Below, one piece after another: positions 10,676 through 58,360 of a stretch of 64,000 nucleotides of DNA (its first letter is position 1; each line of letters opens with the position of its first letter). Origin of the DNA: Geosiphon pyriformis uo1 (lineage: Eukaryota > Fungi > Glomeromycota); the NCBI GenBank assembly GCA_016748015.1, contig JAAOMT010000502.1:744001-808000 (forward strand). The letters run 5' to 3'. Made by a program: the position numbers and the translations under genes. A model generated the notes under the pieces. That model was not told where the DNA came from. It ran no database searches and saw only the letters and a list, made by a program, of their open reading frames with translations.

Positions 10676-12843
10676 TTGGATTAGTCTCAGTGTTGTCTCT
10701 ACTACTTCTAAAAGTCCAAAGATTTTTAATAATAGACCAGTTAACAAGTTGGTCTTTCCTGCTCTTACCACTTCCACTACTACTATTACTACTACTGCTT
10801 CACAAATGGCTGCAAAAGCAAAAAGTTCCAAAAAACAGCAGCAGACAGTTACAACTGCTATGATCACACCAAATCCCTTTGTGGTTCTAGATGAGATCTT
10901 TGGTAAAATCTTCACAACAGCAGCCAGTCCTCTTCTTGATATGGATGGCAACAGCAGCAGCACATCTCTAAAATGGGCCAATATTAACCACTGGCTGTGT
11001 TGCCTGATGTGATACTCTCTAACAGATCATCACCAATCCCAGTAGCAAAACAGCTCATCATTTCAGATGATCTCAAAGATTGGCCTGATCAGATAAAAAT
11101 GGAATCAACTACTCCTTCCCCAATTTTTGGTGCTGCTAATGGTGATGCTTAGGAGAATGTGAATAGTCATCAAAGGTTTTCTGGTTGGGTGGCCTCTAAT
11201 CTTGTATCTGGTGCTATATTTAAGATTAAGATAGCCTTGCTTAGTTCCTTGTTTCAGTTGCTACCTGGTTGTATTGGGCTTAAGTCTATTTTATGAGATG
11301 CTGTCAAGTTGTTCTGTATGGAATTTACATCTCAAAAGAGTTTAAATGGTGTTACCAAAGTGGCTATTGGTGATGGGATTTTTTTAACCACTTTTAAGAT
11401 TGCACAGTCTTCTGGTATGGCCTCTGTTTTTTTCTCTTCTTTGTCAATTGTACTTTGTAATGTACCTTTGGATATTTCTTCTGATGACATCAAATCTGCT
11501 TTTGGCATTTTTGGTGTTGTCACTTCTGTCAAGTTAAAGTCTGCTGACTTATGACAATATGCTGTGGTTTATTTCAAAAACACTTTTTCTGCTGCTGCTG
11601 CTCTTACTCACTGGTCAGTGCTGGTAAAAAAAGACAGTGTTAAGATTCTATCTTTAGTCAACCAAAAAGAGGTTATTATCTCAAGAGATGCTTTCAAAGC
11701 CAAGTTGGTTAATCTTTTTTTTGGCTGTACTGTCTTTGAGATTAGTGATTTGGTCTCTCAAGTTGGTGGCCATACCTGTTTTATTCCTTGCTCTCCTAAG
11801 TCATATTGATGTCCATGTTTTGCTGTGGTTATTTTTAATTCTCTGGAATCTTTAAACAATGCTGTTTTAAAAACTGGTATCTTATATGGCTGCCACATCT
11901 GGTGGGAAACCCCTGGATGTTGCTGCTACTATAGATATTAAAATATAAATCATTTGGCTTTAGAGTGCAAGATGTCATCACCTCTCCCTCCCAAAGTTTC
12001 TTTCAACTTCTCTGGTGGCCTAAAAGTTTTCAAATTCTCATTTGCTAGATTCAAATTTTATGCCAAAGCTGCTGCTATTGTGGTTTTTTTTGTTGCTACT
12101 GCTGCTAATATAAACTTGGATCTTAGTGGTCCTCTCAAAACTACAACTCTTATGTTGCCTGTTGTCTTGTCTGCTTTCAATGTTGCTGTTGAATCTAGGT
12201 TGACTTCTTTGGAATTCTATCTTGGCAAATTGTCTTTACTAATAAAGTTTTTGGTTGAGTCTGTTGATGCTTTGGTTGTTTTAGTTACCAAATTGTTATT
12301 TATTTTACCTGCTGTGAATGTGTCAGTTAAAAAAAGTGTGGCTGGGTTGGCTGAACAGAATAAAGGCTTGACTGCTATTGCTATTGTGATGTAGAAGAGA
12401 ATAATATGCCTTGAAAAAAAGTGTGAACGAGCTTGTGTGGAAGATGTGTTAGATAATAATGACATGGATGATGATGATGATAATGATGATGAAAATAAAG
12501 ATTTCTCTGTCTATGATAACACATTTGATGTTATAATGTATTTATGAGAAAATCAGCCTTCCAGTATCAAATCCAATTCTAATCTAACTGCCAAGTTAAT
12601 GAGTGGTATGGTTAAAAATAGTCATGAGCTTGTTAGCATTATGAGTAAAATGTATAAATTAGATATGTTAAATACATTAAGTAGCAAAGATAGTACTAGT
12701 GTGTAGTTAAAACTTTCCACCTGTGGTTAGCCACATCTTGTAATTATTGTATTATTGGATGAGCTGGCTTTATGAAACTGTCACATTACTGTGGACTTAA
12801 CTAATAAATAACCAGCATGGCTACATGTTAACAAAAAAAAAAA
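10676..12843 (+). mobile_element. ORF1-only poly(A) retroposon, family C copy C1 (5' end cut off by A2)
   Basis: Degenerate RRM/CCHC ORF ending at TAG 12706, LINE-like 3' tail, poly(A) 12833-12843; homologous to 33717-36067. Confidence 0.9.
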
Positions 12844-18576: not shown

Positions 18577-18986
18577 AGTTGTCTTCAAAATAAGCTTGAG
18601 ATCTAACACAAAACTTTTTTTCTTCTAATTTTTATGATCAAGACTAGAACTAAGAATAAAAAAGCTACAAACATTACTTTTCTTATAGTAACTAATAAAG
18701 TTTTAATAAGAGAGAGTCTTTCTGTTATTGAAGCAGCTAGACAAAACGTTTTGGCTATATATTCTTTAAAGAATATTAGTAAAAAGCTGTCTTTAACAGC
18801 TTTTGATTTATTTTTTTCACCTTTGGCTAATAGTTCTTTTCCAGTTAAAGTTTCTTCCAAAAGACACACTTGGGTTAGTTCTAGTGTTGTTTTTACTACT
18901 TCTAAGAGCCCAAAGATTTTTAATAACAGACCAGTCAACAAATTAGTCTTTTTTGCTCTTACTACTCTTATTACTACTACTACTAC
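18577..18986 (+). mobile_element. Family C copy C2, 5' part (interrupted by B2)
   Basis: ORF start MIKTRTKNKKATNITF matches C3 MTTNRAKSKKVANITF; 5' motif aaaacttttttcttct. Confidence 0.88.
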
Positions 18987-21944
18987 TGTTATGGTTAAAA
19001 CTTATATTTTTTATTAATTATCACATGTATTAGCCACTGATGTCACATAAATTAGCCATTCTATTTTTAGAAAGTGATTATTGACTTGATCAATGACCTG
19101 ACCATTGACTTGATCATTGACCTAATTATTGACCTAATCATTGATCTAGTCGTTGACCTGATCATTGACCACTTTTAATAGCTATATAAGTGATGAATTT
19201 TTTAGCTGTAAAAAAGCATGTAGAAATCAAGAAAATCAAATAAATAAAATAACAACTTTCATTTCAATCTTTCTCTTATCACTAATTTCCCTTTCTCTAC
19301 CTTAAAGTATCTGAACATCTTGAGATAAAAGATTACTTGTTGGTTATTCTTTACTTTTTTCCTAAAATGTGTAATAGCAGCATTTGAAGATTATTGAATA
19401 AAATGTGACTGAAGAGCACATCTGATACCTGATATTGAATTATAAGAGTGCTGATGTGAGACATAGAATTATACCAGACATGATCATTTGTTAACAGTAT
19501 GGACTATCTCTCTACCTTCAGATTTTCTGGTTATCTTTTGAAAAGTATAGTAACTGAGATATTTTATGAGATTGATCTCACATATTGAATCCATACTTAT
19601 TCAATTCACTCTTTGAAGTTGAATTTCTTTTGATTCCTTTTATCACCCTACAATCTTGTTCTCTCTTGCTATCCATTAGCTTGTTACTTCAATCCATAAC
19701 ATAAAAGTGGTGCTTTCTGTAAGGTTGTCAAAATTTACTTTGCTTTTTATTATATAAATGATTATTCATACCTGCCACAACAATCAGAAGAACACTTTAA
19801 AGCATACAACAAAAACAATCTAGACTTTATTGAACTCAATCCTTTGTCCTTCTGCTTGATTTGCTTCTCCATTGAAAAACAATCCAGCAGACAATTCTAA
19901 GACTTTTGAAACTGGTTCTTGAACAAGCATTCAGCTGAAATCTACACAGCCTATACAACTTATTACTTTGATCAAGCTTATTTTGAAGACAACTTTGAAG
20001 AAAAAAACAACAGCATTAATCAGCTTTTATATTCCACAACCTTTGAACAACAGCCCCTTAATTTCGAATATCTGAATCATCAAATCCATACTTGGATTGC
20101 TGTCCATCAATCAACTGAAACTTCTCTTGAAACAGAAAAAGAAAGCTATCAAACTGCTTTTGTTTTTGATCTCTTTTCAAGTAAATTAGAACATTCAACA
20201 CAAACAGTTACTTCTGAACTAATGACTAATGATCTTATGCAACAGAACATTCTGATTGCCCTCTAAGGCATACAAACTGCTTTGGGAAGAAGAAACAACA
20301 CTCTATTATTCTTGTTTAGAGGTGATGCACAAGATCCAATTAAATGGTTAAACAATTTTGAAAGAGCTGCCACAGCTAACCAATATGATAATAAATATAA
20401 GTTCCAAATTGTTGATGGCTACTTTCAAGGCTCTTCTGCTATTTGGTTTTCACAAGAAACCAATGCCAATGCTCAACAAAGAATTATTAGATGAGCACCA
20501 GCAAATGCTGGAAAAAACAACACCTCTTTTACTACCCAGTTTGAAATAAAATTTAGAACTCTTATCTTGATATCTAAATGGCACATGGAACTAAAAAGAA
20601 GAATCCAAGGTCTTGGTGAAGTAGTAACTGAATATGCCAAAGCCATCAGAAAATTAATTAAAAGAGTAGACTCTGAAAGAAACTGGACAAAAGAACAAAA
20701 GATTCATTCCTTTACAAAAAGATTGAGAACAAATCTGTCTTATGCTTTTTGGTTCCTTTTGGCCCTGAAAGACAATTCCATAATGGACATGGTCATTGAA
20801 CTTGTCCAACGAATTGAAAACAACCAAAGGATGCACTTGGGATTCACACTTCCAGTTTTTGCTCCTGCTTCTATTATGGCTTCTGCTCCCCAAATGGCTG
20901 TTACCTTTTTTGCTGCCCAAACTCAAGACCCAAATGAACAGTTAATAGATAGACTTACAGCTAATTTTGCCCAGTTACTGGAACTCTTAGCTCAAGCAGT
21001 CAGAGAGAATCAACAACCCCAAAGACCCAGATTTGAACCCTGTTTTAATCAATCCCAGCAACCCCCTTATTAAAAACAACAAAATCATAGCCCACCTGTG
21101 TGTTATTGCTGTGAATTAACTGGATATTTCTCCAGAAATTGTAACAATTCTCCCTTGCCTCCTTCAGCTCCCAGAAACAATGACAATCAAAACAACAGAA
21201 TTATCAATAACAATGTTCCCAACCAAAGACCTAATCATGCCAACATCAATTTTTTTGAAGAGGATCTCTTAAAGTGCAAGCCAACCAAAAGAAAATCTCT
21301 TTTATGCTTTTAACCTAACTAATGATGACCATGACATGGATAAACTAACAATCACCACTTTTGAAACAACAAGAAAGAAGAAGAAAGCCAAAGTTGATTT
21401 TGTTATAGATCCAAAAAAAGCCTCCACATTAACTGTTGATAACAATAAGCCACTAAAGGCCAAAGTTTTCAAGTATTCTCCAAAGTTGGAACCCCCAGAA
21501 ATAGTACAAAAATCTGGTCCTTATTCTGTTGTCAAAGATCTCATGGAAATGTTTGCTCACATTACCTTTGGCCAGTTAATGACTCATTCCCAATTCAGAA
21601 AAAACCTTTACAAATCTTTGATTCCTAAGAAAAAGATACCAAAGACCAACAAGCACCCATACCAAGCTGGACTTGCTGACAACAGCAATATTATTTCTCT
21701 CATTTGTAAAGCCCAAGTGGCTGGTTACTTTATTGATCTGATCCTGAACAGTTGATCATCTGTTAGTGTTATTGCTAAATACTTTTTAGAAGCAATTGGC
21801 AGAAAGATTGATGAATCATCTACAAGACCAATGACCAATGTACATAGTAACAAGAAGAAAGGTCTGAGCATAGCCAAAGCTGTTCCTGTCTGAATCAATG
21901 GCATTAGTATTGAAACTAACATGGAAGTATCTGAAGCAAAAGAA
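18987..21944 (+). mobile_element. Family B copy B2, 5' part (LTR 18987-19701, gag, protease start); continues at 58361
   Basis: LTR, PBS, gag; protease sequence stops at tctgaagcaaaagaa (21930-21944), which recurs at 58361-58375. Confidence 0.93.
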
Positions 21945-22129
21945 AAAAACTTTTTTTTCTCTCTTTGACTCTACCACACAATTTACTTTTTTTTTTTTTG
22001 TTAATGTGTAGTCATGCTGGTTTTTTATTAGTTTAGCCACACTTAAAAAAGCATGACCTTTTCATAAAGCCAACTCACCCAATAATCTAAATTACAAGAT
22101 GCGGTTAACCACTAAGTGGTTATTCCTAA

Positions 22130-25100
22130 CTACATGCTAGTATAACCAAAAAATCTATGAGGTATCACACTATTACACAAAGTACTCCTATCACAAAAAA
22201 CATTAGTCAGTATATCATTACACTGTGTGGACACATCACCTATTTTGACTATGGGTTCGCCACTAACTTTATCACTATCCCTTGAAATGCTATGTATACT
22301 GGAACCACCAGTTGGATTTTTCTTGATCTTATTATCAATACTCATTGATTTTTTCTATTCAGTTTGCAATTTGCAACATTCTTCCCACAATCTATTTCTT
22401 GCTTGAGTAACTGCCCATTTACACACCTTAATTAATACATTATTACTAATCCTTAGGTCAATGTCAAAAAAAGCATTGATCCTTCCAAATTGTTTATTGA
22501 TTAGCCTTTTACATAGCAGATCTATGTTAGACATTGACATGATGTATTTATTAGACAGTACAAGCTTCTCATCAGTATTATAGGCTTTGCATCCCCCTCT
22601 TACAGCCTCTGAAAGGCACTGTATCCACTTATCTTTTACATCATCAATCAGTGTTTTGCCCTCTTGGGTATTCAGAGAGCATTCCCAAAAGTGCTGGTTG
22701 GTTTCTACTTCCCTGTGACATGTCTTACAAAGATTATTCTAGTATACATGAGGACGTCTGTTGTATAGCACCTCTGTTGTTGGCAGCATGTTGTGAAATG
22801 ATTTCATAATAAATGTGTGCATTGCTGAAGAACCAGCTGAGGTGAAGCCAGATAATATCTTTCTATTCCAGTTCCAAATCTTGGTTGTGTATATCCAGTC
22901 TATATTTTGGTCTAAAGATCCTATTGTCTCTTGGACTTTGTTGTTGCCTATCCAGTCTAAAGCTGATTGAAGACTAGCCTGTTTGTTCAGAAAATGCCTG
23001 ATGTTCAGATCCAATTCAACTCTTCTACAAACAGAAATGTATGCAGTCTCCTTAGTATTGTAGACCCACCTCATTGTATCAAGAGTAGTAGATTCTTTGG
23101 CTAGTTTGTCAGCCTTCTCATTTTCTAATATACCAGCATGTGCAGCCACTTTTTTCATGTTGAGATCAATCCTCTTTTCCCTTATTATCACTCTGATTGC
23201 ATTCCATGTGCACCAGTTTGAAGTTTTGAGCTGATTTCTAATAGACAGGAGAGAATCTTTGGACAACCATCTTTGAGTCGTTGCCATCACCACTTAACTA
23301 TCCATGTTTATTGTTAGTTTGCATCTGTAAGGTACTGCTTTCAAAGCTAGCAATACAGCCTTTGTCTCTGCTTTTGTCAATGATAATATTCTATCAATTG
23401 CTATACCAAATTTGGCCTCTATTCCATGTGTTATAAAACCAGCTGCTCTCCTTGCTTTCTCAGAACCAGCTCTTACCATTGAGCCATCTGTTGATATTTC
23501 TATTTCTTTCCTGAGTCTTAACTTCTCTCATACACACTTCCATTGTGTTAGTAAAGTGTTAGGGATATGGATATAAATAGTGTCTCTTTGCATTGTTCCT
23601 AAATCATCTGGTATTTGGTTAGTCAGTATGTGCATATCCAATGTCTCACATTGTGCCACATCAATGTTTCTGTACTCATCCATAATGATTGTAGATTCTA
23701 AAATCTTAAACCATCTGGGAATTCTACTACAATCACTTTTTCTGTACTTCTTTGTGAAGTCCATTCATGTCATCAATGACTCATCTTTGTTCTGTATCTG
23801 ATGCAAGTACAACATGTTTTCTTTTCTTAGTAAGCTTCTAACTTTAATGTAGGTTTCACTTGAAGGTAAGATAGACTCAATTAAATATGTCTGTGGTCTT
23901 GAAGATTCAGGTACCCCATGTGTATTACCATTGCTCTTGAATGAGATGCCTTTTTTTTCCATCATCTGTATAATATTTGCTATAAGATTAACCTCTGGCT
24001 TAGATTGTTCATTAGTGGGATATTCAAGTATACTATGAGCTAATCATCTCTGTGCCTGCAAGTTGGCTAGTCTAATTTTTGTAGCCATTCCAGCAATATC
24101 AGCACTGTTCAATCTGACTAACAAATCTGTGATCTTGCTTTTCACTTGTATATCATCAATTTTGAACAAATTATACAAGGATGAGTGATGCATGGCACTG
24201 ACTGGGAAATCTACTGAAAGTTTTGCTTTTTTCTTCACAGTGGCTGAAATCTTTGAAGTCCATTTTCTAGCCCAGCTATTAGGAATATGAGTCAACTGAG
24301 ATCTGAATTCAATAGCTGGACTGAGTATACTGTTAAAAATGTAAATGGCCTGTTTCTCAGTTATGTGTTTTTTCCTGATGACTGCACACACTGCTTCAAT
24401 GTCAGATCCTATCAAATACATGTAGATGGATCCAACAATTTCAAGATTTGTTTGTCTGGACCAAATTTTAGTGGCTCAACCATTGAAGATCTCCCTTTGG
24501 AGGGTCTGACCACTATTGTCTTAGTCTTATCTAAGTTGATCTCAATATCTACCATTCTAAAAAAAGAACTGGCTGTGTTCAAAATACTTTGCATCCCTTG
24601 TCTTGAGTTAGCTATCCACACTGTGTCATTGACAAAGGCAAGGTAATTCACTGACATCAACAGAGATTGTGTATCTAATTGATTATCCCACTTTTTCCAT
24701 GCTGCTGTCAGTTTGTATCCCTGACTATAATTGGCTTGTTTTACTTCACACAGTAAGGGGTCATAGAAAATTCTCCACATAATGGGTGAGCTTGTTTCCC
24801 CCTGATCCAGTCTATCTTGTACTTGATATTCGTCACTTAACCCAAATTCAGTTATGATCCTGTTGCTTCTATTGTTGTGCATCAAGCCAAACAACTCAGT
24901 AAACCTATTGTTCATCTTAATTCTCTTTAGTGCAACTTCCATGGGTTTCCATCCTACTGAATCATATGCCTTTTTCATGTCCTGAAATGTAAACCAAGCC
25001 TCATTACCAAATTCCCTTGCATGTTCAGCTACAGCATTAATCACATGAATAGGCACTGCTGTGGAGGTATTCTTTAATACTGAGGTATTGTAACCTTTTA

Positions 25101-27001
25101 GGACATTGTGGAGTTCACATGCTTTTGATATCCTAGCAGTTAGAATCTTTGTTAAGATTTTTCTGGTGCTTTCAATGAGTGTGATCGGTCTGGTAATGTC
25201 AATATTGCCACTCCATTCTTTTGGCTTTGGAATTAGTATAACTTGTGCTACTCTCCACTCCTCAGGCATGTTTGCAGCTTTAATACAAGCATTGAGCAAC
25301 GTTTTCAGTTTAGACTTGGTATTAGGTCCATCCTTCCTCTAGAGTTCAGCTTGAATGCCTGATGGGCCAGGAGCTTTGTTATGGGGTGTGTGGCTCAATA
25401 TGTGTTCAAATTCCTCATTTGTTAATTTATTCATTACACTATCAAAGGCATGATCTGGAATGCTTTCAATCAGATCAAATTTGTGTTTCCAACTTTTCTA
25501 TAGGTCAGGCTCAATGCTTTTTGTTCTGGTCCACCCTTGGGCTTTTCTGTTTACTAGCTTTTTAATTTCATCAGAATCATCATGAAATTTGTCTTCTTCA
25601 ATTACATGGTCTAGTACAATTCTTTGTCTTTTTCTGTTCAGGATGCTTTTGATTATAGCTTCTTTGTTTAGATCAAAGTTTTGTTGTCTCCTAATGATAT
25701 TGTCCACTATCTGTCTCTGCTGTTGTAGTCTGATCCTACTTCACAGTGTTGATCTATATTCTTTCTTAATATTGAGTAATTCCATAATCAGCTTATCCTT
25801 TGGGAGAGTCATCAGATATGTATTAACTGCCTCAGGTTTCAGCTGTTTCTATTTGGCCAACAACTGCATAACATTGTTATCATGCATATCTGCATTGTTT
25901 ACTCTTATTAGTTTGATTATATCAGCAACAATCTTAACAAGCTTGTAATTTATGCATTTTTTCTTTGTGTATGCAGATTGGGCTCCCACTTTCCTTTTCA
26001 GTAGGCACTCAGCAGCTTGTAACACAGTCTCTTTGATTGTAAGCCACATCTGGTTTAGATCTTCATTGCTGTTATCTATTGATTTTCTTTGTGCTTCATC
26101 TGTTAGTCAATCAGTTTCTCTTGCATAGATTTCTCATTGGACTCCAGATGCTTTTTTAACATCAATCATAGTTGTGCTACACTTTTTTCTTCCAGATCTA
26201 GATTTTTTAGTGCCTGCCAAGATTCTATCAGATCGGATGATTGTTACTACTGCTTTGTGATCTGTGCTAAAGGATTCATTAACCAATGTTTGTGACCAGT
26301 GAGGCTGTAACTGCATTAGTAAATACATAGTCCAATCTTCTTTATATACCATTTGATGCCCATGTCTTTTCTGGATTGTTTGTTGCATATGCCCCATGTA
26401 TATCCACTAAATTCATATGTTGTAATGTTGCAGCAGTTGGACAAGCTTTGGCCTTATTTGTAGCATATGTTTCCTTAAGTGACTTGAATGACAGATCTTC
26501 ATTCAAATTGCCTGCAACTATGATAATCTCTTTGTTCTGTACAATGTCTCCCAAAAGTTTCCTGATTTCTTTAGCTACTGCTCCCTCAGTAGGCACTTTG
26601 GAAGCAGGCATGTACAGTCCCACTATGTGCACACTGACTCTTCCTCTAAATTTCAATCCCAAATGCAATAACCTCCCATAAAACCCCTTGATTGTTTCCA
26701 CATGGTGTATCCAACATTTTTTGACCAGTATACCCACACCAGTACCCATTTGTTTCTCTGTACTTGATTCCCAAAAGGCATGATATTCATCGAAACCAAA
26801 AAATACACTTTTTTCTTTTGTTGGAGTCAATTTAGTTTCTGTAACAATCACAAAGTCAAATTGTTCTTCAATAACCCAATGTAGCATCTCTTCAGCTTTA
26901 CCAGGATTATTAAGCCCTCTAACATTAACAGTACCAATTTTCCAAGTGTTGTTATTGGAGTAGTTCTGTTCTATGTTGGAATCAGATGTGCTACACATCA
27001 T
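22130..27001 (-). pseudogene. LINE ORF2: APE endonuclease, RT, RNase H, C-terminal CCHC finger (stops)
   Basis: TVNVRGLN/VTETK/AGNLNE/TDH (APE); RPITL, QDMKKAYDSV, LDQGE..SP, FVND (RT); STDGS..AETKAVLLAL..DS..KVAAHAG..NEKADKLAK (RNase H); C..C...ETNQHFWEC; ends YTSM*. Confidence 0.95.
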
Positions 27002-29261
27002 CTGTTTCCATAGATTTAAGTTCTCCAACAATAGAACTGCTCTAGCTACTCTGTTTTTTCACATGCTTCAGTAACTCCAGAATGGATTCCAAAGTTTTTT
27101 TAATTTCTTTGATTTCTAATTCTGGGTTGTATGCGTCTTTTTTTTCTGCTGGGGTAGATTTCAATGTAGTACTTTGGCTTGGTAACCCAATTTCTACTAC
27201 TTTTTTTTCTTCTGAGATGTCACTTGGCTGTTGAGTAACTATTACTTTTTTTCCTTTCTCTATTGTCACTCCAAGTTTGGCAGCAACTGCATTCAGCAGT
27301 TTTGTCATATCATTAACCTACTATCTTAGTTCATCAATTTCACTCTTCCATGGTTGGTTAACTCCTTTTTTTGATTGTTCTTCCCTATTGTTCACTTGTG
27401 GACCAGGTTTCTGAGTATTGTTTGGATTGGTGTTGTTCCAGTTATGGGGCAGTCTGAGTGCAGCCATATCAGCATATGATCTTCCACCAAAGGCCTTGAT
27501 GTTTTCCTCTGGAACATTCCTCTTAACATACAGTTTTGCCAATCTGATATTGTTGGTAACTTTCTTGGTATCTCCTTCTTTTTTCTTATGCAGAGTTGGA
27601 CATTTTGAGACCAAATGTCCTACCTGGTAACAGAAATGGCACTCTTTAGCATCAGTAGGCACCCAGTGGACCAGTATGTTACCAATTATCAAGGGCTTTT
27701 TAGTGGCATTGTTGTGGCTAGCTTCACTGTCAAATCCTACATAAGCACAGCCCATCCTTGTGTAATTTTTACTAGTTCTTGGGATGAAACAGGATTGGGC
27801 TCTGATTTGATCCAAAGTGGTGCTCAAATAGTGAGCAGTACAGTTCTGTGGTAGGCCCACCAATTTAGCTTCCCAGGTTTTTCTCTGCTCAATGATTTTC
27901 TGGGTTCCAATCATTGAGTAAATTCTGACCACATTTTTTCTGACCATGGTCAACCATTGATCTACAGCTCTTGTTGCTTCTTCTTGGTTGTTATATTCAA
28001 TCACAGCTGATTGCCATTTGCCAGCCACTCTGATTTGAATTTTTTTGACCTCACCAAATTCTTTCATAGCAGCCCCCACCTCTCTGTCAGAGATGCCCAA
28101 GGGGATATCTCTTACCAGGACTTTTTTTTGACCAGCTATTTGGATGTTGATGCCATCAATAGCCATCAAAAATGATTCAATTTCATTATTTGCCAGAATT
28201 TCTCTGACTTGGTCTCTTCTGGCCACTTGGGAAAAATCCACTCTGATTTCTTGGTTTCTAGCCATTACAGCCCCCAAAAGGTACCTAACATCTCCCAAGA
28301 GATCATAGATCTACCCCACTTTCTTTCCCATGATTTTTTCAGGTATATCTAATGCTTGTACAAAAAGTACATGCCTTTTGGTCCCATGGACCACCATTTT
28401 CTATCCTTCCTCCTGGTTTGCTTCCATAAGCATGGGTTTTTTGCCAAGTAACCTACTACTGTATTGTCCTGGACTTGGACTAGCCATTCTGCTTGATAGA
28501 CTTGATTCAGAGTCTTCCATGTCTTCTGCAACATCATCTGCATTAGGCTTATCTCTGTTTGCATCAAATAGATTGTCCATTTGTTTTTCATTCTCTAATA
28601 CAGACTTTCCTCTGTTGATCCTGTCCAGAATATCAGAATTGCACTTCCTCAGAGCTGCTTTGATTTGTGCAGCTCTGTCTTCTTTAGGCACTTTGGATGG
28701 TCCATCCATTTTTCTTAGGGACTTTGAGGCTCTCTTTTCACCAGTCCAAGCTTTCATTTGAAATTTGTTGCTATTTCCTCTTTTGTTGAACATTGGCTGT
28801 AAAACAAAGTTATCAGTTCAAACAGATGTGGTTTCAGGTAAGTTTTCTTCAGATATTTGGGTGAATTTCTTAGTTAGTCCTTTTACACTTAATCTTCCAA
28901 TGTGTTTGTATTTTTTGTTGGCCTTTTTCTCTAATTTGTTAGCTGTTATTGGAGAAAAGTCTGTTGCTCTCCTATGTGGAGCTGTTTTTTTTGATGTGTT
29001 GGCTATTCTAAAGGGTGTATTGTCTCCACTACTTGTGTTCACACTTCCAAATGACCTATTGGTAATTTCAAATCTAAATGGAAGTGTAATAGGTCTAGCA
29101 GTTTCCACAGTTGATAAATTTTGTGAATTAGCATTAATGTCTTCTCCTTCAGCAGTGGAAGTTATGTTCCCTTCCACTTGGTATTCACTATCAGTAGTCT
29201 CTACACTTGTACTTCTTTGCATGACTGTTGTTACTTCACTGTTAACGTTGTTATCAGACAC
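26991..29261 (-). pseudogene. LINE ORF1: RRM-like domains, CCHC zinc knuckle, coiled-coil C-terminus (few stops; true start may be ATG 29345)
   Basis: VLVRDIPLG..FGEVKKI, AKLVGLP..AYVGFDS, CHFCYQVGHLVSKC. Confidence 0.88.
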
Positions 29262-29485
29262 TTTTAAGTCTGTTGTGATAGTAATAATAATATATTTCAG
29301 TTAAAGATTTCTTTGCAAAAAACTTATTTTTCAAATTTGAGGCATAGTAAATTGTGTGGTAGCAGTCAAAGAGAGAAAAAAAAAGTTTCACCACACAATT
29401 TACTATGCCTCAAATTTAGAAATTAAGTTTTTACAAAGAAACCTTTAATTATAATATATTATTACTTTCACAACAGACTTAAAAG

Positions 29486-31751: not shown

Positions 31752-33716
31752 CACATCTGATTCTGACACAGAACAGAACCACCCCAATAACAATATTTGA
31801 AAAATTGGTACTATTAATGTTAGAGAACTTAATAATCCTGGCAAAGCTGAAGAGGTACTACAATAGTGTATTGGAGAACAATTTGACTTTGTGATTATTA
31901 CAGAAACTAAACTGACTTCACCCAAACAAAAGGGTGTGTTTTTTGGCTCTGATAAATATCATGCCTTTTGGGAGTCAAGTGCTGAGAAACAAATGAGAAT
32001 TGGGGTTGGTATATTGGTTAAAAAATGTTGGATGCACTATGTGGAAACAATCAGGAGATACTATGGAAGACTGTTACATTTGGCATTGAAATTTAGAGGT
32101 AAAATCAGTGTGCATATAGTTGGGCTGTACATGCCTGCTTTCAAATCGCCTAGGGAGAAAACAGCAGCCAAAGAAATCAGGAAACTTCTAGGAGACATAG
32201 TGCAAAACAAAGAGATAATTATAGTAGCAGGTAATTTGAATGAAGATTTAACATCCAAATCACTTGAAAAACATTTGCTACAAACAGAGTTAAAGCATGT
32301 CCTACTGCTACAATATTACAATATATGAATTTAGTAGATACACATAAAGTATATGCAACAAACAATCCAAAAATGACATGGACATCAAATAGAGTACAAA
32401 AAAGATTAGACTATGTGTTTACTAACATAGTGACAGCCTCACTGGTCACAAACATTGAGATAATTAATGTTAATGAATCATTTAGCATTGATCACAAAGC
32501 AGTAGTAACAATTATCTGATCTGACAGAATATTGGCAGGCACTAAAAAATCTAGATCAAGAAGAAAAAAGAGTAGCACAACCATGATTGATGTTAAAAAA
32601 GCATCTGGAGTTCAATGGAAGATCTATGCAAGAGAAACTGATTGATTAATAGATAAAGCACAAAGAAAATTGATAGATAACAGCAATGATAATCTAAACC
32701 AGATGTGGCTTACAATCAAGGAGACTGTGTTACAAGCTGCTGACTGCCTACCAAAAAAGAAAGTTGGAGCCTGATCTGCACACACAAAGAAAAAATGCAT
32801 AGATCACAAGCTTGTAAGGATTGTTGCTGATATAATCAAACAAATAAGAGTAAACAAAGCAGATATACAAAATAACAATGTTATGCAGCTGTTGGCTAAA
32901 TGGAAACAGCTGAAACCTGAAGCAGTAATTGCATATCTAATAACTTTTCCAAAAGATAAGCTTATTTCAGAATTACTCAGCATCAAGAAAGAATACAGAT
33001 CAACACTGCATGCTAGAATCAGACTACAACAGCAGAGACAAATAGTGGACAATATCATCAAAAGACAACAAAACTTTGAACTAAACAAAGGAACTATGAT
33101 CAAAAGCATTTTGAACAGAAAAAGACAAAGAATTGTATTAGACCATGTCATTGAAAAAGGTGAATTTTATGATAATCCTGATGAGATCAAGAAACTGGTA
33201 AACAAAAAAGCTCAAGGTTAGACTAGGACAAAAATTCTTGAACCTGAACTGTGGAAGAGTTGGAAATACAGGCTTAAGCCAATTGAGAGCATTCCAGATC
33301 ATGCCTTTGATGGTATGATGGCTGAAATAACAAATGAGGAATTTAAACACATATTGAACCACACACCTCATAACAAAGCCCTTGGTCCATCAGGCATATA
33401 AGCTGAACTCTGGAGGAAAGCTGGACCTAATACCAAGTCCAAACTGAGAACATTGCTTAATGCTTGCATAGATGCAGCAAACATGTCTAAAAAGTGGAGA
33501 ATAGTACAAGTCATATTGATCCCAAAGCCAAAAGAATGGGGTGGCAATATTAACATTACCAGGCCGATTACACTTATTGAAAGTACTAGAAAGATTTTAA
33601 CAAAGATTCTAACTGCAAAAATATTAAAGACATGTGAGATTCATAATGTCTTAAAAGATTACAACACCTTAGTTCTAAAGAATACTTCTACAGCAGTGCC
33701 AATTCATGTGATTAAT
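31744..33716 (+). pseudogene. ORF2 of L2, endonuclease and RT start
   Basis: ITETK, AGNLNE, RLDYVF, SIDH, LIPKPKEW..RPITL. Confidence 0.9.
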
Positions 33717-36067
33717 TTTTTTTTTGTTAACGTGTAGCCATGCCAGTCATTTATTAGTTAGTCCACAGTAATGTGGCGGTTTCATAAAGCCAGTTCACCT
33801 AATAATACATATTACAAGATGCGGCTAACCACAAGCGGAAAGCCCTAACTACATGCTAGTACTACCTTTGTTACTTAATGTATTAAACATATCTAATTCA
33901 TACATCTTACCCATAATGCACACCAGTTCATGACTACTCTTAACAAGACTGCTCATCCACTTAGCAGTCTGATCTGGATTGGACTTGATATTAGAGAATT
34001 GAACCTCCCATAACTCCATCATCACATCAAATATATCATCATAGACCAAAAAATCTTTAGCATTACCATCATCATCATCATCATCATCATTATCATCCAT
34101 GTCTTCATCATCAGATATGTTATAATGTACCTTCCCACTCCTCAACTTGAGGGCCCCACTTCCTTTTGTAGCACAAAAGCCACAGCACAAACAGCCTTAA
34201 TTTGGTTTCCCAATCCAATCACACTTTCTTTCATTGTCTCTGCTATAACTGGTGGAGTAGACAATAACGTAGTAACTAATGCAACCAAAGAGCCCACAGG
34301 CTCAACTATAGATTTGATCAACAAAGACAGCTCACTAAGTTGGGTTTCCAGAGAAGCCAACCTAGCATTAACAGCAACATCTGAACCAGAGGAAACAACT
34401 GGCAACAGTGGCACCACAACTTTGGGGGAGGTACTGAAAGCCAGACCCATATTAGCAGCAGCAGCAACAGAAGGAACCACAGAGGTGGCAGCTTTGGCAT
34501 AGGATTTGGCTCCAACAAGAGATAACTTGAGAAAGGCGGGACCACCAGCAGAATTAAAAGAGAGTTTGGGAGGGAGAGATGGCAACACCTTGCAGTCCAC
34601 AGCCAAATGATCCAAACTTTGACATCTATAGCAGCGATGACATCCAGGAGTTTCCCACCAGATGCGGCAGCCATGTAAGGTACTGGTTTTTGAAACAGCA
34701 GCATTTAAAGATTCCAAGGAATCAAAGGTCACCACAGCAAAGCATTGACATTGATAGGAATCAGGGGAGCAGGGAATGAAACACGTATGGCCACCAACTT
34801 GGGAGACCAGATCACTTATCTCAAATGCAGTGCAGCCAAATGGAAGATTAACCAGCTTAGCTTTGAAAGCATCTCTTGAGGAGATAACCTCCTTTTGATT
34901 GGCAATGGGAAGAATCCTAACACTATCTTTTCTGACCAACACAGACCAGTTAGAGAGAGCAGCAGTAGCAGAAGAAGTGTCCTTAAAATTAACCACAGCA
35001 TATTGCCATAAGCCAGCAGGCTTCAACTTAACAAAAGTGACAACACCAAAGACGCTAAGAGCAGATTTGATGTCATTAGAAGAGGCACCCAAGAGTATAT
35101 TGCACAGTGCAACTGACAAAGAAAGGGAAGAAACAGAGGCCACTTCCGAAGACCATGCAATCTTAAGAGTGGTCAAAAAAACCTCATCACCAATGGCCAC
35201 TTTGGTAGCACCATTTAGACACTCCTGAGATGCAAATTCCAATACAACCAGGCATCAACTAAAACAAAGAACTGAGCAAAGTCATCTTAATCTTAAATGT
35301 AGCACCAGGTACAAGATTGGAGGCCACCCAACCAGAGAACCTTTGATGTCCATTCACATTCTCCCAAACACTAGCATCAGATGCACCAGAAACTGGGGGG
35401 GGCACAGATAATTCCATTTCCATCTGATCAGCCCAATCTTTGGGATTGGCAATGATCTGCTGGAGAGTACCATATCAGGCAACACAGCCAGTAATTGATC
35501 TTGGCCCAACTTGGGAGATGTGTTGCTGCTGTTGCCATCCATATTAGGAATAGGGCTGGCTGCTGCTGTGGAGATCTTACTGAAGATCTCATCTGGAACC
35601 ACAAAGGGGTTCGGTGTAACCATAGCAGTTGCAATTGCCTGCTGCTGTTTTTTGGAATTTTTGGCTTTCACGGCCATTTGTAAAGCAGTAGTAGTAGAAG
35701 TAATAGTGGAAGTGGTGAGAGCAGGAAAGACCAACTTGTTGACTGGCCTGTTATTAAAAATCTTTGGGCTTTTGAAGTAGTGGAGACAACACTGGGACTA
35801 ACCCGAGTGTGTCTTTTTGACTGGGGAAGAACTACTAGCCAAAGTTGAAGAAAATGAACCAGAAGCCACTAAAGGCAGCTTATTACTATTATTTTTTAAA
35901 GGAAATGTTGCCAGAATGTTTTGTCTAGCTGCTTCAATAACAGAGAGACCCTCTTGTGTTGAAACTTTATTAGTTACTATAGGAAAAGTAATGTTTGCAA
36001 CTTTTTTACTCTTAGCTCTATTTGTGGTCATGAAATTTAGGAGAGAAAGAGTTTTTTGCCAAATTGT
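33717..36067 (-). mobile_element. ORF1-only poly(A) retroposon, family C copy C3, full length (about 2.35 kb)
   Basis: Poly(A) tail, 16-bp TSD aattcatgtgattaat (33701-33716 and 36068-36083), no RT or endonuclease between the TSDs. Confidence 0.95.
33849..36031 (-). pseudogene. family C protein (about 720 aa when joined): Ser/Thr-rich N-terminus, RRM-like pair, CCHC knuckle, coiled coil, poly-Asp, short C-terminal domain
   Basis: Frameshifted fragments in the ORF track; CYRCQSLDHLAVDC; motif-level homology to LINE ORF1 (VRKDSVRI, AKLVNLP..CTA, CFIP). Confidence 0.85.
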
Positions 36068-37024
36068 AATTCATGTGATTAATGCTGTTGCTGAGCATGC
36101 AAGGAAATTTGGTAATGAGGCTTGGTTTACATTTCAGGACATAAAAAAAGCATATGACTCAGTGGAATAGAAACTCATAGAAGCTGCACTAAAAAAAATT
36201 AAAATAAACAATAGGTTTACTAAGCTATTTGACTTAATACACAACAATAGAAGCAATAGGATCATAACTGAGTTTGGTCTAAGTGATAAATATCAAGTAC
36301 AAGATGAACTGAATCAAGGGGAAACAAGCTCACCTATTTTGTAGAGAATTTTTTATGACTCCTTACTGTGTGAAGTAAAAAAGACCAATTATAATCAAGG
36401 ATACAAATTAACAGCTAAGTGGAAAAAGTGGAACAATCAACCTGATACACAATCTATAGTAGTATCAGTAAATCACCTAGCCTTTGTTAACAACACAGTG
36501 TGGATAGCTAACTCAAGACGAAGGATGCAGAGTATTCTGAACACAGCCAGTTCTTTTTTTAAAATGGTAGATATTGAGATCAACTTAGATAAGATTGAAA
36601 CAATGGTGGTCAGACCTTCCAAAAGGAAATTATTGTTGGTTGAGCCACTAAAATTTGGGCCAAATAGACAGCCCTTAAAATTGTTGAATCCATTTACATG
36701 CACTCAATATTTGGGGGTGTGGATCAGAGCAGAGGGAAAGAATAAAACTGTGCTGAAAATGATAGGATCTGATATTAAAGTAGTATGTAGGATTATTAGG
36801 AAAAAACACATCATTGAGAAACAGGCAATTTACATTTTCAACAGTGTACTCAGTTCTGCAATAGAATTTAGATCTCAATTGACCCATATTCCAAATAGCT
36901 GGGCCAGAAAATGGACTTCAAAGATCTTAGCCACTGTAAAGAAAAAAGCAAATTTTTCAGTAGATTTCTCAGCCAGTGCCATGCATCATTCATCTTTGTA
37001 CAACTTGTTCAAAATTGATGATAT
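36068..37024 (+). pseudogene. L2 ORF2 RT core
   Basis: QDIKKAYDSV, QGETSSP, LAFVNN, YLGVWI. Confidence 0.9.
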
Positions 37025-37727
37025 TGTTATGGTTGAAACTCATAGTTTTTATTAGTTATCACATGTATTAGCCACTGATGTCATATAATTAGCCAACCTA
37101 TTTTTAGATAGTAATCATTGACCTGATTATTGACCTAGTCATTGACCACTTTTCATAGCTATATAAGCAATGAGTCTCTTAGCTGTAGAAAAGTATGTTC
37201 CAAACAATCAAAGAAATATAATAAAACAACTTTCATCTCAAACATTCACTTATCGCTAATTTCCCTTTCTCTACCTTCAAGTATCTGAACATCTTTTGGA
37301 TAAAAGATCTCTTGTTGGTGTTTATCTGCCTTTTCCTAAAACAATTAAACAAAGTATTTGAAGATTATTGAATAAAACATGACTGAAGAGCACATCTGAT
37401 ACTTGATATTGAATTCTAAGAGTGCTGATGTGAGGCATAGAATTATACCAAGTGTGATCATTTGTTGACAGTACAGACTATTCCTCTACCTTCAGATTCC
37501 TTGGTTACCTTTGAAAAGTATAGCGACTGAGATATTTTATGAGACTGATCTTGCACATTGAATCCATACTCATTCAATTCACTCTTTAAAGTTGAAATTC
37601 CCTTTGATTATTTCCATCACCCTACAATCCTGTTCTTCTTTGCTATCCATTAGCTTGTTACTCCAACCCGTAACATAAAAGTGGTGCTCCCTGTGAGGTT
37701 GTCAAAATTTACTTATTTCCTCATTGT

Positions 37728-39278
37728 ATGGGTGATTATTCATACCTGCCACAGCAATCAGAAGAATACTTTGCAGCACACAACAGAAACAATCTAGACT
37801 TTATTGAACTCAATCCCTTGCCCTCCTGCTTGATTTGCTTTCTCCTTGAAGAACAATCTAGTAGACAATTCCAAGACTTTTGGAACTGGTTCCTGAACAA
37901 GCACTTAGCTGAAACCTATACCACATATACAACTTATTACTTTAACCAAGCTTATTTTGAAGACAACTTTGAAGAAAGAAATAATAGCATCAATCAGCTT
38001 TTATACTCCACAACTTTCACACAACAGTCTTCTAATTTTGAATATCTAAATCACCAAATACACATTTGGGTTGCTGCTCACCAATCAACTATAACTCCTC
38101 TTGAAACAGAAGAAGAAAGTTACCAAACTGTTCCTATTTTTGATCTCTTTTTAAGTGAATCAGAACATTTCACTCAAACAGTAACCCCTGAACCAATGGC
38201 CCAAGACTCCATGCAAGCAAACATTCTGGCCGCCCTCCAAGGCATACAAACTGCTTTGGGGCGAAGAAACAACACCCCACTACCCCTATTCAGAGGTGAT
38301 GCCCAAGATCCAATTGAATGGTTGGACGATTTTGAAAGAGCAGCCACTGCAAACCAGTATGATAATGAATACAAGTTCCAAATTGTTGGTGGCTACCTCC
38401 AAGGCTTCCCTGCTACCTGGTTTTCACAAGAAACCAATGCTGGTGCTCAACAAAGAATTGTTAGATGGACCCCAGCAAATATTGGAGAAAACAACATCTC
38501 TTTCACTACCCAGTTTGAAAACAAATTCAGAACCCCCATCTTAATATCCAAATGGTGTATGGAATTAGAAAGAAGAGCCACAGGTCCTGGTGAAGTTGTG
38601 ACCGAATATGCCAAAGCAATCAGAAAACTCATCAAGCATGTAGACTCTGGTAGAAACTGGACTGAAGAGCAAAAGATCCACTTCTTCACAAAAGGATTGA
38701 GAACTGATTTATCTTATGCTCTTTGGCCTCTCTTGGCTTTAAAAGATAATCCCACTATAGATATGGCCATTGAACTCACACAAAGAATTGAAGACAATCA
38801 AAGAATGCATTTGAGATCCACACTTCCAGTTTTTGCTCCTGTTCCTGTTATGGCTCTTACTCCTCAAATGGCTGCTACTTCTTTTGCTGCCCAGACACAA
38901 GATCCAAATGAACAATTAATAGATAGACTTATAGCAAATTTTGCTCAGCTATTAGAACTATTAGCCCAAGCAGTCAGAGATAACTAGCAACCCCAAAGAC
39001 CCAGATTTGAAAACCGTTTTAATCAGCCCCAGCAACCCCCTTACCAAAGACAGCAAAATCATGGCCCTCCTGTGTGTTATAGATGTGGATTAACTGGACA
39101 TTTCTCCAGAGATTGCAACAATCCTCCTTTGCCTCCTCCAGTCCCTAGAAACAATGATAACCAGAACAGCAGAATCAATAACAACAATGCTCCCAATCAA
39201 AGACCCAATCATGCCAACATCAATTTCTTTGGAGAGGATCCCCTAGTTGAAGCCACAGTTTACCAGCCTTTAAACTAG
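37728..39278 (+). pseudogene. gag: gag of B3 (one internal stop at 38985)
   Basis: 419-aa ORF plus in-frame continuation with CYRCGLTGHFSRDC. Confidence 0.92.
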
Positions 39279-39306: not shown

Positions 39307-39364
39307 AAGCCAACTAGAAGAAAACCCTTTTTATGCTTTTAACTTAACTGATGATGACCATGAC

Positions 39365-43973: not shown

Positions 43974-44413
43974 CTGGCAAGTAGAGATGGATCCAGAAAG
44001 CAGAAAGAAAACTGCCTTCATCACCAAGTATGGCACCTATGAATTCACAGTCATGCTTTTTGGTCTCACAAATGCTCCTCCCACCTTTCAATGCTTAATA
44101 GACAAAGTATTTGAATCAGTAAAAGAAAACTTTGTTCTAGTCTACTTGGATGACATAATGGTATACTCAAAAACCTGGGATGAACACCTTGAACATTTGC
44201 AAAAGGTTTTTGACCTCCTTAGAAATGCTGGCCTTAAGATCAATCCAATCAAATCATTCTTTGGACGTCAATCCACCCAGTTCCTTGGCCATCTTATTAC
44301 AAAAAATGGAATCTTCTCTGATCCAGCCAAAATTGAAAAAGTTCAAAACATTAGACAACCAATAAATGTTCATGAACTACACTCTTTTCTTGGTTTGGCC
44401 TTTTATTATCGCA

Positions 44414-45939
44414 TCTCAGGAGTGTCTAAATGGTGCTACCAAGGTGGCCATTGGTGATGAGGTTTTTTTGACCACTCTTAAGATTGCACGGTCTTCAGGA
44501 GTGGCCTCTGTTTCTTCCCCTTCTCTGTCAGTTGCACTGCACGATGTACCCTTGGGTGTCTCTTTTGATGACATCAAATCTGCTCTTGGCATTTTTGGTG
44601 TTGTCACTTCTGTTAAGTTGAAGCCTGCTGACTTATGGCAATATTATGCTGTGGTTAATTTTAAGGACACTTCTTCTGCTGCTGCTGCTCTCTCTAACTG
44701 GTCTGTGTTGGTCAGAAAAGATAGTGTTAGGATTCTTCCCATTACCAACCAAAAGAAGATTATCTCCTCAAAAGATGCTTTCAAAGCTAAGCTGGTTAAT
44801 CTTCCATTTGGCTGTACTGCATTTGAGATAAGTGATCTGGTCTCCCAAGTTGGTGGCCGTATGTGTTTTATTCTCTGCTCCCCTAATTCCTATTGATGTC
44901 AACGTTTTGCAGTGGTGATCTTCGGTTCCTTGGAATCTTTAAATGCTGCTGTTTTAAAAACCAGTACCTTACATGGCTGCTGCATCTGATGGGAAACTCC
45001 TGGATGTCGTCGCTGCTATAGATGTCAAAGTTTGGATCATTTGGCTGTGGACTACAAGGTGTTGCCATTTTTCCCTCTCAAACTCTCTTCTAATTCTGCT
45101 GGTGGTCCCATCATTTTCAAGTCATCCCTCGTTGGAGCTAAATCTTATGCCAAAGCTGCCACCTCTGTGGTTCTTCCTGTTGCTGCTGCTACTGATATGG
45201 GTCTGGCTTTCAGTACCTCCCCCAAAGTTGTGGTGCTGCTGTTGCCGGTTGCCTCCTCTGGGTCAGATGTTGCTGTTAATGCTAGGTTGGCTTCTCTGGA
45301 AACCCAACTTAGTGAATTGTCTTTGTTGATCAAATCTATAGTTGAGCCTGTGGGTTCTTTGGTTGCATTGGTTAATACATTATTGTCTACTCTACCAGTT
45401 ATGGCAGAGGCAATGAAAGAAAGTGTGATTGGATTGGGAAACCAAATTAAGGCTGTTTGTGCTGTGGCTTCTGTGCTGCAAAAAGAAGTAGGGGCTTTCA
45501 AGTTGAGAAGTGGGAAGGTACACTATAACATATCTGATGATGAAAACATGGATAATGATGATGATGATGATGATGATGATAATGATAGTGATGCTTAAGA
45601 TTTTTCAGTCTATGATGATACATTTGATGCGATGATGGAGTTATGGGAGGTTCAATCCTCTAATATCAAGTCTGATCCAGATCAGACTGCTAAGTGGATG
45701 AGCAGTCTTGTTAAGAGTAGTCATAAACTTGTATGCATTATGAGTAAGATGTATGAATTAGATATGTTTAATACATTAGATAGCAAAAGTAGTACTAGCA
45801 TGTAGTTAGGGCTTTCCACTTGTGGTTAGCCACATCTTGTAATATGTATTATTGGGTGAGCTGGCTTTATAAAACCGCCATATTACTGTGGAATAACTAA
45901 TAAATGACTGGCATGACTACACATTGACAAAAAAAAAAA
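44414..45939 (+). mobile_element. Family C copy C4, 5'-truncated
   Basis: Near-identical to the C3 3' part; ORF ends STSM* at 45805; poly(A) 45929-45939; no TSD. Confidence 0.92.
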
Positions 45940-56578: not shown

Positions 56579-58360
56579 CTATACTAAAATTAAAGGCTTA
56601 TTGAGAAAGGAGAACATTTTGTATTTGCATTAGGTAGAGAACAAGGATGGATTACTGATAACATGAATGGACTTTACAAGGAAGTACAGACAGAGTGACA
56701 GTAATAGAATATCCAAATGGTTCAAGGTGCTAGAATTTACAATCATTATGAATGAATACAGGAACATTGATATAGCCCAATGTGAAGCATTGGGGATGCA
56801 CAAATTAAATACTGAAATACCAGATGATCTGGAAATATTGCAAAGAGACTTTATTTACATCCATATTTCTGATACCTTATTGTTACAATGTTGAGACTCA
56901 AAAAAAAAATAGAGATATCAACAGATGACTCATTGGTAAAAGCTGGTTCTGTGAAAGCTAGAAGAGCAGCTGTTTTTGTAATACATAGAATGAAAGCCAG
57001 CTTTGGTATAGCAGTAAATAGAACATTGTTATCAACAAAAACTGAGGCTAAGACTGTATTACTGGCTTTGAAGACAGTACCATACAAATGTAAACTGATA
57101 TTAAACACAGATAGTCAGACAGTTGTATCAACAGCTCAAAATTGGTTGTCTAAAGATTTTTTCTTGTCTATTAGGAATCAGCTCAAAACTCCTAACTGGC
57201 ATACATAGAATGCAATCAAAGTAGTAATAGGTGAAAAAAAAATTGATTTAAAGTGGCTGCACATACTGGAGTATTTGAAAATAAGAAGGCTAATAAACTA
57301 GCCAAAGAAGCTACTGCTTTTGACACAGTGGAATGGGCCTACAACACCAAGAATATCAGCTATGTTTTCTTTTGTGAAGGAGTTGAGTTGGATTTAAATA
57401 TTAAACAATTCCTAAGCCAACAAACTGAGCTTCAAGTTGCTTTAGATTGGATAAGCAATAACAAAGTCCAGAGAGCATTAGGGCCTTTGGACCAAGAGAT
57501 AGACTGGGCATGCACAACCAAGGTTTGGAATTGGGATGATAAAATGTCTTCAGGTTTCATCTCAGCTGGTTCCTTAGCAATGCATACATTTATTATGAAA
57601 TCATTTTACAACATGCTGCCAATGACAGAGGTGCTGTATAACAGATGTTCTCTAATGTATCTAAACAATCTTTGCAAAATATGTTACATGGAGGTAGAGA
57701 CCAATCAGCACTTTTGGAAATGCTCTTTGAATACTTAAAAAGGCAAGACACTAATGGATAAGATAAAAAATAAATAAATGCAGTGCTTATTAAAGGCTGC
57801 GAAAAAGAAACATAAAACCATAGACTCTGGTAAAAAGATTGTCTTGTCCAAAGAGTATATTATGTTAACACCCAACATAAATTTGCTATGCAAAGAATTG
57901 ATAGATAAGTAATTTAGAAGGATCAATACATTTGCTGACATCAATTAAAAGACTAACAATAATGTACTGATTAAGGTGTGTAAATGGGCAGTAACTCAAG
58001 TAAGGAATAGGTTATAGATTGAATATTGCAAAGCACAAACTAAGTGAAAAAAATCAGTAGGTATTAATAATAAAAATAAGAAAAGCCTATTGAATAGGTC
58101 TAATATACATATAATATCAGTAAATAGTGATAATAATGACAGCATATCCAAAGTCAAGATGAGTGATATATTCACACAGTGTAATGAGATACTGGCTGAT
58201 GTTATACTACCTTGTAGTTAGACATAACCACTTAGTGGTTAGCCACATCTTGTAATTTAGATTATTAGGTGAGTTGGCTTTATGAAAAAGTCATGTTTTT
58301 TGAGTATGGCTAAATTAATAAAAGACCAGCATGGCTACACATTAACAAAAAAAAAAAAAA
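56579..58360 (+). pseudogene. L2 ORF2 3' part (RNase H, CCHC finger), 3' tail and poly(A)
   Basis: STDDSLV..KTEAKTVLLAL..NTDS; CKICYMEVETNQHFWKC. Confidence 0.9.

Follow-up and report, generated by a model that had tools for sequence, protein, structure and literature searches.

The window analyzed here is a 64,000-nucleotide (nt) stretch of the genome of the fungus Geosiphon pyriformis (contig JAAOMT010000502.1, positions 744,001 to 808,000), and its central feature is a copy of family C, a family of retroposons with a single open reading frame (ORF) and no reverse transcriptase (RT) of its own. This copy, which reads from 36067 to 33717 on the minus strand, is confirmed as a poly(A)-tailed retroposon inserted in the RT domain of a long interspersed nuclear element (LINE). 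The host LINE belongs to a family termed LINE-a; its RT reading frame is split by the insertion (...AVPIHVIN on one side, AVAEHARKFG... on the other) and picks up exactly past the duplicated target site. An original prediction, made from the letters of the window, had described a unit with poly(A) and a 16-bp target-site duplication (TSD) at this position; both are present, the poly(A) as a run of nine adenines and the duplication without a mismatch. Family C has a structured 3' tail in common with LINE-a, an ORF1 lineage of its own, and an ORF under purifying selection between lineages. It appears most likely that C borrowed the copying enzyme of the resident LINE, and the earlier interpretation of an old, independent, non-autonomous family is supported.

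Four copies of the unit had been predicted in the window. All four loci exist, but only the copy described above is full-length, and the other three are partial (Table 1). A search of the 128-Mb G. pyriformis genome with the C unit gave 1114 first-look candidates, of which 62 matches were listed; about 31 of the 62 cover the whole unit, and thirty full-length copies (L001-L030) were cut out for comparison. Their length is as uniform as predicted, but at 2.41-2.43 kb rather than 2.3 kb; against this family length, deletions in the window copy total about 80 nt. A common start, (A)nCTCTTTCTCTCCTAAATTTCATG, and a common end, GGCTACACGTTAAC(A)n, are present in 30/30 copies, and the fixed 3' end ggctacacgttaac(A)n occurs in all C copies, several of which lack the 5' part. 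TSDs are recognizable in most copies read, including L002-L005, L012, L017, L021, L025, and L030; in copies other than that of the window they measure 12-18 bp, and the A-runs extend from 9 to over 70 nt. The tail follows directly after the stop codon in 30/30 copies, in agreement with the predicted absence of a linked ORF2.

None of the thirty copies retains a fully open frame. The longest frame (L023) spans 706 codons, and with the family's normal end the ORF comprises about 757 aa. In this near-intact copy, Pfam detects RRM_1 (two stretches, E 3e-10) and zf-CCHC and nothing beyond them, neither an endonuclease nor an RT. The predicted RRM-RRM-CCHC protein is thereby found for the family, but the window copy's own ORF is dead, with at least four in-frame stops and several frameshifts. 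The C protein consists of RRM-RRM-CCHC plus lineage-specific N- and C-terminal regions and follows the pattern of a "type I" ORF1p (RRM, then CCHC), a class that Khazina and Weichenrieder reportedly defined in 2009 by one or more RRMs ahead of a CCHC zinc knuckle. An AlphaFold2 model based on an 11-row alignment has a mean pLDDT (predicted local distance difference test score) of 33, too low for the model to be of use. All 120 best protein matches to C are G. pyriformis "hypothetical proteins". At the RNA level, Rfam returns no family match to the C element, only two sub-threshold hits resembling small nucleolar RNAs in the acidic-repeat region, and no RNA polymerase III head was seen, though no scan aimed at one was made.

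LINE-a, the proposed helper, is 7.4 kb long, begins with AAAAAACTTTTTTTCTCTCTTTGAC, and is flanked by TSDs; its copies are about 90% identical to each other. Its ORF1 (about 780 aa) contains an RRM and a zinc knuckle, and its ORF2 encodes an apurinic (AP)-type endonuclease (APE), an RT, and an RNase H and terminates in ...GYT-S-(V/M)-stop (..YTSM-stop in the copy at 21990..29388). The C protein had been predicted to be distantly related to the ORF1 of the resident LINE, and the identity is indeed just 27-34%, in the RRM-CCHC core only. Profile comparison with hhalign gives a probability of 99.6% over this core and detects no similarity in the N- and C-terminal thirds.

The two ends of the elements are alike at the DNA level. 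C ends in ...tactagcatgTAGttagg, and the following ~135 nt match the LINE-a tail with about 77% identity; in all, the last ~145 nt of C are about 77% identical to the LINE-a 3' end. The homology extends from about 13 nt before the stop codon to the poly(A), and nothing farther upstream of the stop than this aligns. A BLAST search of the window with the C unit accordingly marks two further 150-nt matches (21991-22142 and 58205-58355) at LINE 3' ends. The predicted shared end and tail are thus present, but the predicted terminal codons TSM-stop look like a CpG-decayed form of T-S-V-stop (AGCGTG), probably the ancestral last codons. At the other extremity, the predicted common 5' motif of 16 nt, AAACTYTTTYTCTC, has three occurrences in the 64-kb window, each exactly at a 5' end: two belong to C copies and one to LINE-a; 0.54 occurrences are expected by chance, and 0/100 shuffles reach three matches. 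Pairwise divergence is of the same order among C copies as among LINE-a copies (transitions 7.1% vs 6.0%, transversions 1.3% vs 0.6%), a rough comparison, as the copy sets were picked by score.

The tail that C and LINE-a have in common is a structured RNA module. Well-kept C and LINE-a tails adopt the same predicted four-way junction at about -43 kcal/mol, with z-scores of -3.3 for C and -3.7 and -4.1 for LINE-a (three best-kept copies folded). In the 13-bp closing stem, UAGC(G/A)UGUAGUUA pairs with UGGCUACA(C/U)GUUA. Across 25 distinct tails, standard pairs occupy 98.2% of cells, compared with 30-49% when the partners are slid, and only 1/500 shuffles reaches the observed cells with double-sided changes; these pair counts lean towards structure, since the tail alignment was fitted to the structure model. 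Three of the five pairs of helix 6 change on both sides. The apical hairpin of the third arm exists in three versions: GGUCAUGCUU/AAGUGUGGCU in LINE-a, CCACA/UGUGG in young C, and CCAAC/GUUGG in an older C subfamily; two compensatory pair swaps separate the last two. Among C tails, those of the oldest C subfamily are the most similar to LINE-a, at about 82% identity, and carry the LINE-a-type hairpin H3; the copies that bear them are about 72-76% identical to the window copy, and one of them is full-length (2431 bp). In LINE-a, the 5' strand of the closing stem covers the last codons of ORF2. The last ORF2 codons are shared by C and LINE-a because the homologous block starts where the RNA module starts, inside the ORF. 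A covariance model of the tail, applied to the window and 23 loci, finds only C and LINE-a tails and no third user.

The ORF1-only organization is not confined to C. A protein search uncovered a sister family, C2 (5749 first-look candidates), in which three of 63 listed matches have no stop in a 708-aa ORF. One intact C2 copy (L043:941-3300 = G000 C705:145624-147983) is a 2.3-kb unit with this ORF and nothing downstream. It has the same 5' end as C (AAAAAACTCTTTGTCTTCTTAATTTTATGACCACG) and an unrelated 3' tail, and the covariance model of the C and LINE-a tail matches neither the C2 locus nor metagenomic LINEs. Over their full length the proteins of C and C2 can be aligned at about 50% identity, and their alignment breaks down only in the last few residues; RRM and CCHC are found in the C2 ORF and the LINE-a ORF1 as in C. 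C2 looks younger than C and is possibly active. Since 2.4-kb ORF1-only units occur at 76%, at about 90%, and, in C2, at about 65% nucleotide identity, the ORF1-only state is old.

A maximum-likelihood tree of the ORF1 core unites all C-type ORFs in a single clade with a long stem and 100/99 support, apart from all sampled autonomous-LINE ORF1s; the phylogeny that the original prediction proposed as a check thus separates them. The LINE-a ORF1 groups with autonomous-LINE ORF1s from metagenomes, and a G. pyriformis LINE group represented by the protein P0234 is a weakly supported sister. The closest autonomous-LINE ORF1s found anywhere are 27-35% identical to C, the P0234-type ORF1 among them (27-35%); outside Geosiphon, the nearest relatives are 27-32% identical and lie upstream of APE, RT, and RNase H ORFs.

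These results bear on where the C lineage came from. One alternative is that C arose long ago from the LINE-a lineage itself by internal deletion, with one origin for tail and ORF, a fast-diverging ORF1, and no tail capture. Such a descent would accommodate the common 5' terminal motif and the LINE-a-like tails and H3 hairpin of the old C subfamilies, but it is unlikely: C2 joins the same ORF and 5' end to an unrelated tail, the ORF1 tree places LINE-a with other autonomous LINEs and not with C, the outer thirds of the two proteins have no detectable similarity, and the boundary of homology is sharp and coincides with the closing stem. More doubtful still is a recent origin of C by deletion from an autonomous LINE outside the sample that carries the same ORF1; this would leave no independent lineage. 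An abundant and seemingly active family, the P0234-type LINE, is present in the genome, yet its ORF1 is far from C in identity, no gene model was found in which a complete C-type ORF1 and APE-RT stand together in the right order, and the range of identities among ORF1-only units indicates an old state; the autonomous LINE with the same ORF1 at high identity that the original prediction set against itself was not found among the copies and gene models compared. It is very improbable that the copies are no transposon but go back to a host RRM-CCHC gene, as its processed pseudogenes or retrogenes, or make up a domesticated gene family. Despite their annotation as hypothetical proteins in G. pyriformis, they number about 1100 first-look candidates in the genome search; their 5' end is fixed and their tail is of the LINE type, they fall into several subfamilies, they are decayed and lie within transposable element (TE) islands in nested fashion, and they share a homologous core with LINE ORF1s.

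The C ORF is under purifying selection between lineages, as an independently evolving family had been expected to be. By the Nei-Gojobori method, C (L023) and C2 (L043) differ by a nonsynonymous divergence (dN) of 0.38 and a synonymous divergence (dS) of 1.06, and the ratio, 0.36, is an upper bound because of neutral decay in L023. Within C, variants were classified by the majority base of each alignment column. On the branch to the young master (sites with one state common to two old subfamilies and another in the young majority), nonsynonymous to synonymous changes (N:S) stand at 44:39 (1.13), compared with 269:120 (2.24) among private mutations (p = 0.007). Shared transversions among young copies give 9:14 vs 65:29 (p = 0.014), and the old subfamilies compared singly with the young give a trend (N/S 1.5-1.7, p = 0.12). 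Each of the three lineages is ORF1-only and has the same ends; on the simplest reading, selection would have maintained the protein during the time in which the element lacked an RT. Synonymous divergence is itself uneven along the ORF: the proportion of synonymous differences between C and C2 is 0.47-0.49 in the first 300 codons and 0.60-0.78 in codons 300-500. The lower 5' value could reflect nucleotide-level constraint (an internal promoter or a packaging signal) or recombination.

With a probability of about 0.8, judged from sequence comparisons, family C is a non-autonomous retroposon of the type without long terminal repeats (non-LTR) that belongs to an independent lineage and uses the LINE-a ORF2p in trans. 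C would be transcribed from an internal promoter or an initiator at the shared 5' motif, and its own protein would coat the C RNA in cis. The LINE-a ORF2p would then recognize the 3' module and insert the C RNA by target-primed reverse transcription, which would yield the TSDs and poly(A) seen. C may have obtained the module from LINE-a, or traded it with LINE-a, in a single self-contained piece; template switching is the probable route, with a junction 10-25 nt upstream of the stop codon. A move in one piece would account for the last ORF2 codons having been carried along in frame. Several observations weigh against this account. No intact copy was found among 30 of C or among 12 of LINE-a, and given this lack the C and LINE-a pair looks extinct. 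The measurement of selection inside the tail-a lineage covers only the final ~140-190 codons, and the transition-based N/S test is uninformative because of hypermutable sites.

A broader generalization is more tentative, at somewhat less than even odds. C-type elements may be long-lived, protein-coding parasites of LINEs that are independent of any one helper. Their ORF1p, with its lineage-specific N- and C-terminal domains, would be selected because it is needed in cis, and they would change helpers by swapping self-contained 3' modules whose closing helix holds the helper's ORF2 stop, so that a few helper codons would always be carried in frame.

Table 1. Positions of family C, its 3' module, and related elements in the window
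Feature	Position	Strand	Remarks
Family C copy, full-length but dead, 2351 nt	33717..36067	-	87-91% identity, over the whole length, to at least 30 genomic copies
TSD aattcatgtgattaat, poly(A) side	33701..33716		read directly
TSD aattcatgtgattaat, 5'-end side	36068..36083		read directly
Poly(A) tail, A9 (9 T on + strand)	33717..33725	-	
ORF remnant, single ORF (family ORF ~757 aa)	33849..36031	-	stops and frameshifts
Two RRM domains	34688..35122	-	RRM_1 in near-intact copy L023; core homology to LINE-a ORF1
CCHC zinc knuckle CHRCYRCQSLDHLAVDC	34592..34642	-	
Canonical 5' end, motif AAAAACTCTTTCTCTC, common to C2 and LINE-a 5' ends	36041..36057	-	
Ten extra nt (acaatttggc) between TSD and canonical 5' end	36058..36067	-	unique to window copy
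Structured 3' module common to C and LINE-a, four-way junction, three hairpins	33726..33861	-	
AAUAAA signal, 27 nt before poly(A)	33750-33755	-	
Closing stem, 5' strand UAGCAUGUAGUUA: last three codons, stop codon (33849-33851), 3 nt beyond	33846..33858	-	
Closing stem, 3' strand UGGCUACACGUUA, adjoins poly(A)	33728..33740	-	
Older C copy, 75% identity, first ~265 nt missing, same tail, poly(A)	10678..12841	+	BLAST of unit vs window
C copy fragment, 5' 380 nt only, 80% identity, cut by Gypsy LTR	18607..18988	+	BLAST of unit vs window
C copy fragment, 3' 1.5 kb, 92% identity, tail and poly(A)	44411..45937	+	BLAST of unit vs window
Full-length LINE-a, 7.4 kb, proposed helper family; tail 21996-22150	21990..29388	-	
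Tail of second LINE-a copy	58197..58350	+	

The surroundings of the window copy are dense in other elements. Two LINE-a copies stand head to head in an 8.7-kb inverted pair (window 25036-33716, center ~29389) whose arms are 81.5% identical to each other, below the ~90% typical among LINE-a copies; the + strand copy of the pair begins about 30 nt inside the LINE 5' end. A nest of several Gypsy-type LTR elements occupies 12888-21944, 37017-43860, 46700-56590, and 59150-63990, and the C and LINE-a copies are inserted into or around these elements. Decay of the repeats is strongly transition-biased, with a transition to transversion ratio of about 5.5 in C (L001-L030) and about 10 in LINE-a (L031-L042), and CG, TG, and CA alternate at the same sites across C copies and LINE-a copies. 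This pattern suggests cytosine methylation with deamination, or a process like repeat-induced point mutation, acting on repeats.

Elsewhere in the genome, a diverged form of the C2 tail motif, GATTGGTCCAAGTGGCTGGTCAC, is found at ten or more loci (e.g., G000 C143:22584, C584:48252, C644:287274, C647:550483), which could be the tail of C2's partner LINE. Matches to the C2 tail for which no C2 ORF is listed lie at G000 C786:255201, C606:43290, C421:110787, C778:562623, C704:633445, C643:118120, C784:90401, C714:1822810, C725:99931, C338:16221, and C717:73315. The P0234-type LINE is very abundant (7142 first-look candidates, e.g., G000 C694:365794-367863); many of its copies have long stop-free frames of up to 1521 aa, and on these frames it may still be active. 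Its match coordinates show no adjacency to the matches of the C2-tail pattern, both lists being sparse. The protein P0085 (alignment A2, columns 560-765) is C2-like in its first two thirds and has a different C-terminal third and end, which suggests that subfamilies have recombined and that there may be a third tail.

The G. pyriformis gene set contains hundreds of copies of C-type or related elements annotated as hypothetical proteins, and where a long model contains RNase H or APE beside a C-like part, it is a fusion of neighboring elements. P0026 combines a LINE 3' end with a C copy, and P0130 and P0234 each span two elements. As candidates for a C-type ORF1 plus ORF2, P0026 was rejected because its RNase H lies upstream of the C part, and P0130 and P0234 because each has a second LINE-type ORF1 of its own. 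The practical consequence is an inflated gene set, in which C-type ORFs are annotated as genes and some are fused to their neighbors.

The ORF1-only strategy is already known from mammals, flies, and amoebae (HAL1, HeT-A, and TRE5-A.2, respectively; HeT-A is named in PMC10088271). For fungi, the original prediction knew of no such family, and no description of an ORF1-only retroposon family was found in the literature searched, the coverage of which was not exhaustive; a survey of the transposons of arbuscular mycorrhizal fungi that includes G. pyriformis contains neither "ORF1" nor "non-autonomous" in its text (PMC11952901). The EKA family (AVRk1/AVRa10) of Blumeria graminis is likewise fungal, derived from LINE ORF1, and highly repeated: it consists of truncated ORF1s of the degenerate two-ORF LINEs Satine and Kryze, and EKA genes are proposed to be co-opted effectors (PMC4641428). 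Unlike C, EKA is not a retroposon family with ends of its own.

Drosophila telomeres carry HeT-A and TART, with HeT-A a long-lived Gag/ORF1-only element that relies on the RT of another element. HeT-A is telomere-specific and co-opted by its host, in contrast to C, which is dispersed and nested in TE islands. The comparison with short interspersed nuclear elements (SINEs) concerns the tail. In SINE-LINE pairs, the SINE 3' tail is homologous to that of the partner LINE, its conserved stem-loops are thought to be recognized by the RT, and exchange of tails is possible (PMC5786205). The C tail resembles those of stringent-type pairs in that its secondary structure is kept across partners through compensatory change. 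UnaL2 and UnaSINE1 are a pair of this stringent type. C differs from SINEs, which are short and non-coding and have an RNA polymerase III head that comes from a small RNA gene, in its length (2.4 kb), its protein-coding capacity (about 757 aa, under purifying selection), its AAUAAA signal, and the lack of an Rfam small-RNA family.

HAL1 has an L1-type ORF1p with a coiled coil, an RRM, and a C-terminal domain (CTD) and without a CCHC. HAL1 ("half-L1") is defined as a derivative of L1 in which ORF1p is the sole encoded protein (PMC5753468), and, like C, it is ORF1-only, LINE-dependent, and present in many copies, having arisen as a LINE parasite (PMC5753468, citing Smit 1999, Bao & Jurka 2010). 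It differs in its direct and repeated derivation from L1, which uses poly(A) and no specific tail structure; C has an RRM-RRM-CCHC protein, a stringent-type structured tail, a fungal host, and an ORF1 clade of its own. C therefore works like HAL1 but is no member of HAL1 proper.

The closest functional parallel is TRE5-A.2 of Dictyostelium discoideum, for which experiments show that ORF2p mobilizes it in trans, that ORF1p supplied in cis raises activity strongly, and that a structured 3' module is essential (PMC3159450). Like C, TRE5-A.2 is non-autonomous and of the non-LTR type; it has no ORF2 but retains ORF1 together with the 5' and 3' modules, and by analogy this precedent shows that a design such as that of C works. 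Unlike C, TRE5-A.2 arose by recent deletion and has the same ORF1 as its helper; the C ORF1 is about 30% identical to its helper's, in the core alone. C also has a subfamily history of its own and a sister family whose tail is different, and it shows no targeting of tRNA genes. The C system makes testable the role of ORF1p for an RNA without its own RT, the specificity of ORF2p for a 3' RNA module, and helper switching by non-autonomous elements. The helper's ORF1 is essentially retained in HAL1 and TRE5-A.2, whereas the ORF1 lineage of C is deeply diverged from that of its helper; the C lineage has persisted through several subfamilies and, together with C2, is attached to different LINE-type tails.

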